Below, piece by piece: positions 203 through 7,170 of a stretch of DNA of 7,552 bases (position 1 is its first letter; each line of letters begins with the position of its first letter). Source of the DNA: Octopus sinensis. Taxonomy: Eukaryota. The notes under the pieces were generated by a model, which worked only from the letters and a program-made list of their open reading frames with translations, searched no databases and was not told the DNA's origin. Location: the NCBI RefSeq assembly GCF_006345805.1, contig NW_021828833.1:1-7552 (forward strand), in the 5' to 3' direction. The translations under genes were made by a program, and so were the position numbers.

Positions 203-1134
203 GAGAGAGAGAGCAGTGCATGCCATCAAAGTGATACTGAAGTAAAATATATGAAGCCCAAATACCCATCATGACTACCCGTCTGATAAGGGTACACTAA
301 GCACATGCATCACAACCATATGTGCGCGACATAGCGATCTCATATCAAGATAAACAAGTCGAGTAGCCCATCCCGCTCAAAAGGTCTCTGAATAAGGTTT
401 GTTTAAGGATGTTGAACAGGCCACCCATGTTTCCAAATGTGAATTGTCCAAACCTCCAAGAATTCCTTTCAACACACGACTATGATGCTCCCCCACTACT
501 TCTGCTCGTGATCAAATATGCACATATCGTCAGCCACTAAGGGACATGCTCAACTGGTTAAGGTCAAACAACTGACAAGCAATCTGTGGTAATTGGCAGA
601 ATATTTGCTGTAGCCCATCTTTTTATACCCGACAAAACAATGTACATGATAACACTTCCAGTCAGTTAAGATCAGAAGCCATGAGAGCCACTGCCTGGTA
701 CTGCATCAGGGTATTATCAAATCTGTGGTATTGAGCAGAATATTTGCTGTAGCCCATCTTTTATACCAAGACAAACAAACATGTACATGATAACACTTCC
801 AGTCAGTTAAGATCAGAAGCCATGATAGCCACTGCCTGTACTCGTGCATCAGGGTATTATCAAATCTGTGGTATGAGGCAGAATATTTGCTGTAGCCCAT
901 CTTTTATACCAAGACAAAACAATGTACATGATAACACTTCCAATCATTTAAGATCAGGAGCCATGAGAGCCACTGTCTGGTACTGCATCAGGGCATTAGC
1001 AAATCTGTGGTACTGAGCAGAATATTTTCTGTAGCCCATCTTTTATACCAAGACAAAACAATGTACATGATAACACTTCTAATCAGTTAAGATCAGAAGC
1101 CATGAGGGCCAGTGCCTGGTACTGCATCAGGGTA
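203..1134 (-). mobile_element. Element X copy 1: unclassified non-coding interspersed repeat with four 139-bp terminal units (strand assignment provisional)
   Basis: Reverse complement aligns end to end with 5529-6080 and 6131-7170. It has a ~50-bp internal deletion near 356 relative to those copies and (TTA)n on both sides. Confidence 0.85.
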
Positions 1135-1135
1135 T
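578..1135 (-). repeat. Tandem array of four ~139-bp units
   Basis: Marker catcaggg recurs at 704, 847, 986 and 1125 (spacing 143, 139, 139). Confidence 0.95.
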
Positions 1136-1185
1136 TTATTATTATTATTATTATTATTATTATTATTATTATTATTATTATTATT
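1135..1185. repeat. (TTA)n microsatellite
   Basis: Direct. Confidence 0.95.
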
Positions 1186-1232
1186 GATAACATCGACGAT
1201 AATGTTTACGTCTAAAACCAATCACATACCAT

Positions 1233-1289
1233 CACACACACACACACACACACACACACACACACACACCACACACACACACACACACA
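1233..1289. repeat. (CA)n microsatellite
   Basis: Direct. Confidence 0.95.
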
Positions 1290-1415
1290 ACTTCATATAC
1301 GGGTGGACACACAGACATAATGGACAGGGAAACGTTGTGTATAACTTCCCTTCTACATTATATACACCCTGAACGGTACCCGGTATTGTCTCACACGTTA
1401 ATCCACACAAACAAA

Positions 1416-1458
1416 CACTCACACACACACACACACACACACACACTCATACACACAC
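1416..1458. repeat. (CA)n microsatellite
   Basis: Direct. Confidence 0.9.
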
Positions 1459-1483
1459 GCGTTTTTTAAATAGTCTTTAATAG

Positions 1484-1598
1484 TTTGGCTTGCTTCCGTT
1501 ATTGGACTGTGGCCATGCTGGGGCACCACCTTGAAGGTTTTTAGTTGAACAAATCAAACCCAATATATCTTTTTATCTTTTACTTGCTTCAGTCATTG
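1484..1598 (-). mobile_element. Degraded SINE 3' fragments (tail type 4, partly duplicated)
   Basis: Minus strand gggtttgatttgttcaact resembles the SINE core end ggggtcgatgtaatcgact with CpG decay. It is followed by ccttcaaggtggtgccccagcatggccacag, and a second piece ends tgactgaagcaagtaaaagataaaaagata. Direct repeat cttgcttc(c/a)gt(t/c)attg at 1489 and 1583. I recall this tail from octopus SINEs but cannot verify it. Confidence 0.6.
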
Positions 1599-1609
1599 AA
1601 GGGGAATGG

Positions 1610-1789
1610 CAGACAGGCAGACAGACAGACAGACAGACAGACAGACAGACAGACAGACAGACAGACAGACAGATAGATAGATAGATAGATAGATAGATAG
1701 ATAGAAGATAGATAGATAGATAGATAGATAGATAGACAGAATAGATAGATAGATAGATAGATAGATAGATAGATAGATCATAGATAGAT
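1610..1789. repeat. (GACA)n(GATA)n compound microsatellite; tail or target of Tx1 copy B
   Basis: Direct. Confidence 0.95.
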
Positions 1790-2159
1790 TATGTTTTCTT
1801 TATTAGCTACACAGGGCTGCACACAAACAGGACAAATTACAAGGTAGAGCTTTTCTTTTTGGGGTAAAAAAAGGGGTTTGGTTTTTCGATCAAAAGGGAT
1901 CGTAAAAGGAAAGAAGAGGACAAAAAATGGGGGGGGGATAGAAAATAAAAGGAAAAGGAAAAATCGATCAATAGGGATCGTTTATCACAGAAATGTCAAT
2001 ATAAAGTGTAAAGGGGAGGACAGGTGAGGTTTACCTGTGGAAAGAAAAGCCTACGGAAAAGACCACGGTAACCTCGGTCAAGGAAGTCACATGTTATATT
2101 TTTTTTACAAATAAGCAACTCTCTGTATTAATTTTTACGGTTCATAGGATCATAGTCAA
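1790..2159 (-). mobile_element. Tx1/L1-clade LINE copy B: last ORF2 codons plus 3' UTR, severely 5'-truncated
   Basis: Minus strand starts ttg act atg atc cta tga (LTMIL*; stop 2142-2144), matching LSMIL of copy A. It shares ttacc(t/c)gtggaaagaaaa(g/a)cctacg...accacggtaacc and tttctttattag with copy A. AATAAA at 1799-1804 precedes the (CTAT)n tail. Confidence 0.8.
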
Positions 2160-4801: not shown

Positions 4802-5008
4802 TCAGACAAATCCATAACAAAAACACCAGGACTTACAACACATATAACATACAGAAAATTGCACTACTAGGCACTGCACACATCCTACGCAGAACACTTT
4901 CCATACAATAACCATCAGAGCATCACAACAAATCACAGCACATACCCAAGGCACACAGAGCTGCGCTCGGTAGTGAAGTGAAAGCACGCTATAAAAATAA
5001 AACTACTG
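4802..5008 (+). mobile_element. R4/Dong-clade (RLE-type) LINE 3' fragment
   Basis: 4837-4911 translates NTYNIQKIALLGTAHILRRTLSIQ*. The QK.ALLGTA.ILR..L motif is the characteristic C-terminus of R4/Dong ORFs. It is followed by a ~100-bp 3' UTR with AATAAA (4996-5001) and an (AAT)n tail; this ORF end is not in the ORF track. Confidence 0.82.
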
Positions 5009-5071
5009 AATAATAATAATAATAATAATAATAATAATAATAATAATAATAATAATAATAATAATAATAAT
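5009..5071. repeat. (AAT)n microsatellite (Dong tail meeting the SINE tail)
   Basis: Direct. Confidence 0.95.
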
Positions 5072-5303
5072 TTGTTTCTTTATTAGCCACAAGGGGATAA
5101 ACATAGGGGACAAAAAAGAACAGACAAACGGATTAAGTCGATTACATCGACCCCAGTGCGTAACTGGTACTTAATTTATCGACCCCGAAAGGATGAAAGA
5201 CAAAGTCGACCTCGGCGGAATTTGAACTCAGAACGTAACGACAGACGAAATACCCCTGAGCATTTCGCCCGGCGCGCTAACGTTTCTGCCAGCTCGCCGC
5301 CTT
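5072..5303 (-). mobile_element. Full-length tRNA-derived SINE (tail type 2, Tx1-like 3' end)
   Basis: Minus strand: aaggcggcgagctggcagaaacgttag (A box), gagttcaaattc (B box), core tttcatcctttcggggtcgataaattaagtaccag, tail gtcccctatgtttatccccttgtggctaataaagaaacaa. Confidence 0.9.
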
Positions 5304-5307
5304 ATAT

Positions 5308-5344
5308 GATAATAATAATAGTAATAATAATAATAATAATAATA
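5308..5344. repeat. (AAT)n microsatellite
   Basis: Direct. Confidence 0.95.
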
Positions 5345-5481
5345 GTTTCAAAATTTGCCACAAGGTAAGGAAGAAAGACAAGGTCGACCTCGGCGGAATT
5401 TGAACTCAGAACTCAGTGACGGGTGAAACATCGCTAGACATTTTGTCCAACGTGCTAACGACTCTGCCACTTCGCCGCCTT
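5345..5481 (-). mobile_element. Short internally deleted tRNA-SINE (tail type 3), second copy
   Basis: Same architecture and same deletion junction as 4569-4709. Confidence 0.88.
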
Positions 5482-5528
5482 AATAATAATAATAATAATA
5501 ATAATAATAATAATAATAATAATATAAT
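5481..5528. repeat. (AAT)n microsatellite
   Basis: Direct. Confidence 0.95.
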
Positions 5529-6080
5529 GCCCTGATGCAGTACCAGGCAGTGGCTCTCATGGCTTCTGATCTTAACTGATTGGAAGTGTTATCATGTACA
5601 TTGTTTTGTCTTGGTATAAAAGATGGGCTACAGCAAATATTCTGCTCAATACCACATTTGCTTGTCAGTTGTTTGACCTTAACCAGTTGAGCATGTCCCT
5701 TAGTGGCTGACGATATGTGCATCTCTGATCACGAGCAGAAGTAGTGGGGGAGCATCATAGCCATGTGTTTAGAGGGATTCTTTGGGGTTTTGATAGTTCA
5801 CCTCTGAAACATGGGTGGTTCTTTCAACATCCTTAAACAACCTTATTCAGGGACCGTTTGAGCGGGATGGGCTACTCAACAGAAAGAAAAAATTCTAACT
5901 GGGCCCCACCTGCAAGGTCATGTGCTGTTTATCTTGATATGAGATCACCATGTCGCGCACATATGGTTGTGATGCATGTGCCTGGTGTACCTTTATCAGA
6001 CGGGTAGTCATGATGGGTATATTGGGTTTCGTATATTTTACCCCAGTGTCACTTTGATGGCATGAACTGCTCTCTCACTC
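5529..6080 (+). mobile_element. Element X copy 2 (single terminal unit, 552 bp)
   Basis: Runs from gccctgatgcagtacc to actgctctctcactc with (AAT)n on both sides; colinear with X1 and X3. Confidence 0.85.
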
Positions 6081-6129
6081 AATAATAATAATAATAATAA
6101 TAATAATAAATAATAATAATAATAATAAT
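6081..6129. repeat. (AAT)n microsatellite separating X2 and X3
   Basis: Direct. Confidence 0.95.
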
Positions 6130-6544
6130 TGCCCCGATGCAGTACCAGGCAGTGGCTCTTGTGACTCCTGATCTTAACTGATTGGAAGTGTTATCATGTA
6201 CATTATTTTGTCTTGGTACAGAAGATGGGCTACAGCAAATATTCTGCTCAATACCACAGATTTGCTAATGCCCTGATGCAGTACCAGGCAGTGGCTCTCA
6301 TGGCTTCTGATCTTAACTGATTGGAGGTGTTATCATGTACATTGTTTTGTCTTGGTATAAAAGATGGGCTACAGCAAATATTCTGCTCAATACCACAGAT
6401 TTGCTAATGCCCTGATGCAGTACCAGGCAGTGGCTCTCATGGTTTCTGATCTTAACTGATTGGAGGTGTTATCATGTACATTGTTTTGTCTTGGTATAAA
6501 AGATGGGCTACAGCAAATATTCTGTTCAATACCACAGATTTGCT
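6128..6544 (+). repeat. Tandem array of three 139-bp units
   Basis: ccc(t/c)gatg marker at 6132, 6271 and 6410 (exact 139-bp period). Confidence 0.95.
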
Positions 6545-7170
6545 TGTCAGTTGTTTGACCTTAACCAGTTGAGCATGTCCCTTAGTGGCTGACGATATGT
6601 GCATCTCTGACCACGAGCAGAAGTAGTGGGGGAGCATCAAAGCCATGTGTTGAGAGGGATTCTTCGGGGTTTGGATAATTCGCCCTTGGAAACATGGGTG
6701 TTTCATTCAACATCCTTAAACAACCCTTATTCAGGGACCCTTTGAGCGGGATGGGCTACTTAACCTGAAGAAAAGTCTAACTGGGCCCCACCTGCAAGGT
6801 CATGCACTGTTTATCTTGATATGAGATCACCATGTCGCGCACATACGGTTGTGATGCATGTGCCTGGTGTACCCTTATCAGACGGGTAGTCAAGGCGGCG
6901 AGCTGGCAGAATCGTTAGCACGTTGGACAAAATGCTTAATGGTATTTTGCCCGTCATTGCGTGCTGAGTTCAAATTCCGCCGAGATCGACTTGCCTTCAA
7001 ACCTTTTAGGGTCGACAAATTAAGTACCAGTTGCCACTGGCCCTTTCCCTCAAAATTCCGGATCTTGTGCCTAGAGTAGAAAAGATTAGACGGATGGTCA
7101 TGATGAGTATATTGGGCTTCCTTTATTTTACCCCAGTGTTACTTTGATGGCATGCGCAGCTCTCTTACTC
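6131..7170 (+). mobile_element. Element X copy 3 (three terminal units, interrupted by a SINE)
   Basis: Starts gccccgatgcagtacc and ends gctctcttactc then aataatgatgatg. The X body resumes after the SINE insertion. Confidence 0.85.
6893..7087 (+). mobile_element. tRNA-derived SINE (tail type 1) nested in X3 with a 13-bp target-site duplication
   Basis: A box TGGCAGAATCG 6904-6914; B box GTTCAAATTC 6968-6977; TSD agacgggtagtca (6880-6892) / agacggatggtca (7088-7100). Confidence 0.9.

Follow-up and report, generated by a model that had tools for sequence, protein, structure and literature searches.

Element X of Octopus sinensis, a non-coding repeat with fixed ends nested in AAT microsatellites: a candidate non-autonomous retroposon

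A 7552-nucleotide stretch of the Octopus sinensis genome (RefSeq assembly GCF_006345805.1, contig NW_021828833.1, positions 1 to 7552 of the forward strand, hereafter the window) carries three copies of a real, discrete, non-coding and non-tRNA repeat with fixed ends, which we call element X. The bodies of these copies are 89.9–93.3% identical over 375–418 bp in a MAFFT alignment, so that their resemblance is not due to chance. The most distinctive feature of X is an array of 139-bp monomers at its 5′ end, which was absent from an earlier description of this DNA made from its letters alone (the sequence-only reading). On balance, we consider it rather likely that X is a non-autonomous retroposon of the non-LTR (long terminal repeat) type which has an (AAT)n tail, homes to (TAA)n and depends for its copying in trans on a long interspersed nuclear element (LINE) that uses (TAA)n. 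The three copies are organized as follows, with one of them interrupted by a short interspersed nuclear element (SINE).

X1, 203–1133, minus strand: body 203–577 with a 44-bp deletion, and four monomers at 578–712, 713–855, 856–994 and 995–1133 (alignment; Tandem Repeats Finder (TRF), period 139, 4.0 copies).
X2, 5529–6080, plus strand: one monomer (5529–5662) and the body (5663–6080), the shortest form (alignment and monomer comparison).
X3, 6131–7170, plus strand: monomers 6131–6269, 6270–6408 and 6409–6544, and the body 6545–7170, interrupted by a SINE (TRF and alignment).

In the orientation that we favour, X consists of one or more 139-bp monomers followed by a non-coding body of ∼ 415 bp. 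According to the alignment and the junction table, all three copies start with (G/A)CCC(T/C)GATGCAG immediately past an AAT-type tract and end with GCTCTC(T/A/T)(C/A)CTC immediately before AATAAT, the terminal bases and the tail reading ..CACTTTGATGGCATGMACTGCTCTCWCTC(AAT)n. X2 and X3 are arranged head-to-tail with a 50-bp (AAT)n tract (6081–6130) between them, whereas the outer flanks of X1 are unrelated to those of X2 and X3. Differences in length among the copies come from the number of monomers (four in X1, one in X2 and three in X3, as determined by TRF and alignment, with the array at the GCCCTG end), from the 44-bp deletion in X1 and from the SINE nested in X3. The sequence-only reading had already noticed three copies that share their first and last bases, the head-to-tail order of X2 and X3 and the position of both ends in AAT-type tracts, all of which we recovered. 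Its coordinates were correct for X2 and X3 and ran one base too far for X1 (1134 instead of 1133), and its length estimate of ∼ 550 bp fits X2 only, as X1 and X3 deviate from it owing to their monomer numbers and the nested SINE.

The eight monomers are 90–99% identical to each other. The single monomer of X2, which is 93.9–99.2% identical to every other one, is the nearest to the eight-monomer consensus. Adjoining monomers within the same copy (the second and third of X3, the third and fourth of X1) have private changes in common, which indicates that the arrays expanded via local tandem duplication, separately in each lineage. Consecutive monomers are joined by just one AAT (ATT on the other strand), so the duplicated unit can be described as 'AAT plus 136 bp'. 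A TATA-box-like motif, GGTATAAAAG, is found in seven of the eight monomers (e.g. at 5613–5622, 6354–6363 and 6493–6502), at a point about 53 bp upstream of where the following monomer, or the body, begins; the exception is the first monomer of X3, in which it is changed to GGTACAGAAG.

X is a dispersed family of variable structure. Spurious open reading frames (ORFs) within X matched only 'uncharacterized proteins' of Octopus bimaculoides, with 64–92% identity, and seven O. bimaculoides ORFs in UniRef derive from X copies. Two of these, P0006 and P0007, cross a monomer–monomer junction, the body of P0007 being internally deleted. Two others, P0002 and P0005, exit X at two different points inside the monomer, which fits 5′-truncated copies, although nested insertions could look alike. 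In P0004, as in all three copies in the window, the array starts at monomer base 1, and this constant starting point is a modestly unusual trait of X. Exact 22- to 23-mers of X had no match in the metagenome, prokaryote-genome and viral collections, a full-text literature search with X sequence strings retrieved no paper, and ten ORFs of the window were absent from the protein collection.

The orientation of X was judged from its junctions with the surrounding AAT-type tracts (a caret marks the junction).

167–202, (ATT)12: 3′ tail of the 5′-truncated SINE at 43–166 (plus strand), and also the tail or target tract at the 3′ end of X1 (TRF, junction table).
1134–1185, (TTA)16–17: upstream of the 5′ end of X1, with an irregular junction, ..AATAAAT^ACCCTG in X orientation.
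5481–5528, (TAA)n: upstream of the 5′ end of X2, with an irregular junction, ..AATATAAT^GCCCTG.
6081–6130, (AAT)n: 3′ tail of X2 with a regular junction, CTC^AATAAT, and also upstream of X3 with an irregular one, ..AATT^GCCCC.
7171–7194, degenerate AATAAT(GAT)4GGTAAT: at the 3′ end of X3 and the right edge of the AAT nest.

Such tracts make up only 5.4% of the window and yet are abutted by six of the six X ends, far beyond what would be expected by chance. At its CTC end, X is followed by an in-phase AATAAT in each of the three copies, whereas the bases that precede the GCCCTG end are irregular in all three (AAAT^, ATATAAT^ and AATT^). Within the window, the orientation is known or likely for five SINEs, for two LINE 3′ ends that carry (ATCT)n tails and for an element referred to below as Y, and in all of these the tail is regular and in phase at the 3′ end; SINE 5′ junctions fall within ATT tracts in three cases, and two of these are irregular (GATTA^ and CATATA^). 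To the irregular 5′ junctions of X may be added the two O. bimaculoides ORFs that exit within the monomer, with the same reservation about nested insertions. Work on R2 indicates that variable 5′ junctions are expected where the RNA ends precisely at the 5′ boundary of the element (PMC3774820). The regular CTC^AATAAT junction, combined with the irregularity of the opposite end, favours the orientation chosen in the sequence-only reading, with the monomers at the 5′ end, the (AAT)n tail at the 3′ end and the plus strand as the sense strand of X2 and X3. We accept this orientation with considerable, if not complete, confidence. Base composition and strand skews did not discriminate between the two strands.

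The same tracts hold several other repeats, the positions of which are listed here. The sense strands of the tRNA-like SINEs all end in (ATT)n.

43–166, plus strand: tRNA-like SINE, 5′-truncated.
4570–4708, minus strand: tRNA-like SINE.
4801–5008, plus strand: element Y, 208 bp, 42% A and 13.5% G, with an imperfect AAT tract upstream.
5072–5305, minus strand: tRNA-like SINE.
5345–5480, minus strand: tRNA-like SINE.
6893–7087, plus strand: tRNA-like SINE nested in the body of X3, with a one-unit ATT tail (7085–7087) and a 13-bp target duplication (6880–6892 and 7088–7100).

Embedding in AAT is not special to X, as eight retroposons (four SINEs, the three copies of X and Y) are nested in this way. 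They form two nests, at 5–1185 and 4530–7194, each on one AAT microsatellite. In all eight, the polarity of the tail is that of the tract, with the (ATT)n-tailed SINEs on one strand and the (AAT)n-tailed X and Y on the other, which suggests that the orientation of insertion is set by pairing between tail and target. X1 is placed within what appears to be a single SINE tail that it splits into parts of 36 bp and ∼ 50 bp. Y, which has the same orientation and type of tail as X, ends in ..AAAACTACTG^(AAT)21, i.e. ..ATAAAAATAAAACTACTG (..ACTACTG) followed by a perfect (AAT)21, and is probably the 3′ end of a LINE with a (TAA)n tail, left after 5′ truncation. The SINE inside X3, bounded by the duplicated AGACGGGTAGTCA and AGACGGATGGTCA, is a later insertion that is separate from X. 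Whereas four of the five tRNA-like SINEs are embedded in AAT tracts, this one occupies a non-AAT site, and landing in AAT is therefore a preference rather than a rule for SINEs. The five SINEs have the head (A)GGCGGCGA..GTTCAAATTCCGCCGAG in common but differ in their 3′ ends, of which there are at least three kinds, each followed by an (ATT)n tail; neither ARAGORN nor Rfam called a tRNA in their heads.

ARAGORN found no tRNA in X, and neither the whole window nor a more sensitive scan of positions 5470–6140 contained a credible match to an Rfam family, the models covered including the hammerhead, HDV (hepatitis delta virus)-like and twister ribozymes, tRNA, 5S, 7SL and small nuclear RNAs; all that appeared were CrcZ artefacts caused by the AAT repeats and snoRNA noise below the threshold. 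No Pfam domain was found in X in any of the six frames, the ORFs were short and none was conserved in all three copies, and searches for terminal or subterminal inverted repeats and for an LTR pair in X were likewise negative. Both the absence of tRNA boxes and of a 5S head and the absence of terminal inverted repeats, an LTR pair or a conserved ORF had been claimed from inspection of the sequence and stood up in these searches. Folding of the monomer and of both termini was unremarkable (z-scores from −1.8 to +0.9). Runs of T4–T6 occur on both strands of X, among them one in each monomer, which argues against its transcription by RNA polymerase III (pol III). A classical SINE was rejected on account of these runs and the missing Rfam or ARAGORN head, an LTR element for want of an LTR pair, a miniature inverted-repeat transposable element (MITE) or Helentron for want of terminal inverted repeats (TIRs) or subterminal ones (subTIRs), and a segmental duplication in view of the unrelated outer flanks. 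A 43-codon ORF runs opposite to the presumed sense strand of X in X1 (409–540, plus strand) and X3 (6582–6713, minus strand), with the same start and stop in both, and is broken in X2. Its product, ML..PMFP...DAPPLLLLV..AHIVSH, had no Pfam match, P0006 of O. bimaculoides reads through the same frame, and it is probably a chance ORF.

Outside the nests, the window contains a degraded C-terminal region of a LINE (2247–3571, minus strand) with stop codons, frameshifts and a weak match to zf-RVT (E = 0.014), whose 3′ untranslated region (UTR) ends in ..GGCCTAATAAAGAA(ATCT)n. A second copy of this 3′ UTR (1790–2158, minus strand) adjoins it and has an (ATCT)n tail of its own, and large (AGAT)n/(CAGA)n arrays are found at 1619–1789, 2159–2246 and 3572–4073. 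The final ∼ 50 bases of the SINE at 5072–5305 (5072–5130) resemble the LINE 3′ end (2247–2300 and 1790–1850) in the motifs ..TTTGTCCCCTNTGT..CCCTGTGTGGCTAATAAAGAAA, although the tails differ, being (ATT)n in the SINE and (ATCT)n in the LINE. Judging from this similarity, the two look like a SINE–LINE pair with a common 3′ end and different microsatellite tails. Between a (CA)n and a (CAGA)n/(AGAT)n array, positions 1470–1600 form a short unique-looking block (..GACTGTGGCCATGCTGGGGCACCACCTTGAAGG..) which may be another repeat fragment.

Starting from what was observed directly (the anatomy of X, its non-coding nature, the asymmetry of its junctions and the polarity rule of the nests), we infer an RNA intermediate, a pairing step and the identity of a partner. 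The RNA of X would comprise a 5′ array of one to four monomers, the body, the 3′ end ...GCTCTCWCTC and an (AAU)n tail, and a 5′ end of this RNA at GCCCUGAUG would fit the favoured orientation of X and not the opposite one. At an AAT microsatellite that has been nicked, the (AAU)n tail would pair with the (ATT)n strand, from which the cDNA would then be primed, i.e. by target-primed reverse transcription. Most such targets in this genome would be (ATT)n tails of tRNA-like SINEs, which are very abundant. As a result of this pairing and priming, new copies of X would be inserted into AAT tracts in a single orientation and be flanked by AAT at either end, and the number of monomers would change within lineages through local tandem duplication. 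Reverse transcriptase would have to come in trans from a (TAA)n-using LINE, with an element of the Dong-R4 type as the most likely candidate. Dong targets (TAA)n in Bombyx, Anopheles and the snail Biomphalaria (PMC3812793), and the sense strand of Bombyx Dong reads (TAA)7^GCTCCC at the 5′ junction, which is the cut site of an HDV-like ribozyme (PMC3774820). R2, in turn, has short internally deleted non-autonomous derivatives (SIDEs) (PMC3774820), so that the background invoked in the sequence-only reading, i.e. the targeting of TAA repeats by Dong and the existence of R2 SIDEs, is borne out by the literature (PMC3812793; PMC3774820). In octopus, Dong-R4 LINEs belong to the most abundant groups and to those with recent activity (PMC13282606; PMC8967140), which makes them a plausible partner; Octopus vulgaris has five Dong-R4 families with 1129 young insertions (PMC13282606).

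As for the earlier proposal of a site-specific non-autonomous retroelement, the non-tRNA nature of X, its fixed ends and junctions of the target-primed type agree with it, whereas the pattern need not imply strict site-specificity, since the SINEs and Y are embedded in AAT just as X is, one SINE occupies a non-AAT site and pairing alone could suffice. Several further observations count against a (TAA)n-homing retroposon served by a LINE. In P0004, the monomer end is followed by no more than two AT-rich codons and then by unrelated non-AAT sequence, so that an upstream AAT tract is not obligatory. Within the window, X has no similarity to the LINE fragment at 2247–3571, the 3′ UTR copy at 1790–2158, the SINEs or Y; the sequence-only reading took part of Y (4912–5008) for the 3′ UTR of a Dong fragment and remarked that the end of X does not match it. 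A 5′ ribozyme of the Dong or R2 type was not detected with any Rfam model at E ≤ 10, and a strict HDV-like descriptor had no match at either terminus. A relaxed HDV-like descriptor matched 44–86% of all positions and is too unspecific to decide the question, while the ribozyme candidate that recurred is a weak one, with a wobble-rich P1 of 4–5 bp and an L3 loop that lacks the usual C residues. The orientation argument draws on three copies of X and on calibration elements of the same window, and a target-site duplication of X is not visible because AAT repeats flank X on both sides.

The same kind of element might be mobilized by passive homing, in which a LINE of the apurinic/apyrimidinic endonuclease (APE) type with (TAA)n 3′ repeats (I/Nimb-, CR1- or RTE-like) would act without the restriction-like nuclease of Dong/R4, and the AAT on both sides would result from tail–target pairing and the abundance of SINE tails. 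We treat this as a serious possibility, albeit an unlikely one. The SINEs of the window fit it well, the 13-bp duplication around the one at a non-AAT site being typical of APE LINEs, and their pattern indicates that a preference without strict specificity operates in this genome; P0004, where an X end lies beside non-AAT sequence, points the same way. LINEs outside R4 that end in (TAA)n do exist, e.g. the I element (PMC3747384), but among the LINE groups recently active in O. vulgaris, which are RTE, Dong-R4, CR1, L1-Tx1, Hero and R2 (PMC13282606), only Dong has been documented with (TAA)n (PMC13282606; PMC3812793), and the presence of AAT both upstream and downstream in three of three copies of X, as well as in Y, also counts against passive homing.

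It is improbable, in our judgement, that X should be read in the opposite orientation, in which the sense strand would take the form GAGWGAGAGAGC...body...monomers...CATCAGGGC(ATT)n, with the monomer array at the 3′ end and with a tail and a LINE partner common to X and the SINEs. Read in this way, X would point in the same direction as all SINEs of the two nests and have the same tail motif. The (TTA)/(TAA) tracts on the monomer side are the longest and purest (48–51 bp), and one ATT separates successive monomers, both of which fit this orientation. However, the tails would then begin irregularly in all three copies (C^ATTATATT, C^AATTATT and T^ATTTATT), unlike all reference tails in the window, and none of the three 5′ junctions would show any irregularity or departure from phase. 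Moreover, the 3′ terminus of X would have no similarity to the 3′ ends of SINEs and LINEs in the window, although that of the LINE fragment is clearly shared by one of the SINEs (SINE-b), and P0002 and P0005 would be truncated at the 3′ end, contrary to target-primed reverse transcription. An origin at the DNA level, either as a tandem-repeat Helentron or MITE of the molluscan pearl/CvA/Cg_HINE type or as a segmentally duplicated satellite-like block, seems very improbable. In molluscan HINEs, a short non-coding element does go together with a microsatellite and with ∼ 160-bp monomers arrayed in variable number (PMC7492417), and X2 and X3 lie in tandem, but the microsatellite of HINEs is internal to their left flank (PMC7492417), whereas X has no subterminal inverted repeats, no 3′ palindrome, unremarkable folding and no conserved flank past its microsatellites. 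A duplicated block is also at odds with the difference between the outer flanks of X1 and those of X2/X3 and with the further diverged copies elsewhere in O. bimaculoides.

Returning to X as a presumed passenger of a (TAA)n-using LINE, its features can be compared with those of several known systems. Like X, Dong elements have (TAA)n/(AAT)n on both sides and, in the favoured orientation, (TAA)n upstream of a 5′ end that starts with G, and they are found in molluscs (PMC3812793), being an abundant group in octopus; unlike Dong, X codes for nothing and has no detectable HDV-like ribozyme at its 5′ end. R2 SIDEs are, like X, short, non-coding, non-tRNA passengers with fixed 5′ and 3′ ends (PMC3774820), but they are defined by the R2 5′ ribozyme, by identity to the R2 3′ UTR and by insertion into 28S rDNA, and the 5′ monomer array is a feature of X. 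With the bivalve Helentron derivatives (Cg_HINE, pearl/CvA), X has in common a molluscan host, short length, the lack of coding capacity, a variable monomer array and a microsatellite (PMC7492417), whereas their subTIRs, 3′ palindrome and conserved right flank are all missing in X. Microsatellite-tailed LINE/SINE pairs (RTE, CR1, L2 and I) and the so-called 'microsatellite families' share with X a simple-repeat 3′ tail of constant phase and mutual nesting in tails; such pairs both generate and interrupt microsatellites, and the SINEs of the window behave alike. They differ from X, which has neither a pol III head nor a 3′ end in common with a LINE of the window. The monomeric 5′ UTRs of mouse and rat L1 contain a variable number of tandem units of ∼ 140–200 bp, and L1 arrays usually start at variable points inside the monomer. 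X likewise has a variable number of tandem 5′ units, and each of its monomers contains a TATAAAAG motif, but in the three copies of the window and in P0004 its array starts at monomer base 1.

This constant start would be explained if the monomer were a 5′ processing or promoter module, such as an initiator or an RNA, of divergent or unknown class, that cleaves itself precisely at AAU^GCCCUG, as arrays of one, three or four monomers would then always begin at monomer base 1. A bolder proposal, in which X would be the first non-autonomous passenger to be described for the Dong/R4 clade, with the monomer as its 5′ processing or promoter module and the (ATT)n tails of SINEs as its landing sites, is speculative and, we think, doubtful.

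Octopus genomes consist of repeats for about two-thirds, and hundreds of their SINE families are unclassified (PMC13282606). Most probably, X neatly exemplifies a process that is already known, and the family itself is a new or uncatalogued one of a known kind. A clear account of such a family, which inserts into AAT, lacks a tRNA head and bears monomers at its 5′ end, would help to sort some of the unclassified repeats of octopus and to explain how nests on AAT microsatellites grow to the kilobase scale. If its partner is indeed of the Dong-R4 type, X would be a convenient short substrate for the study of RNA and target recognition in that clade.

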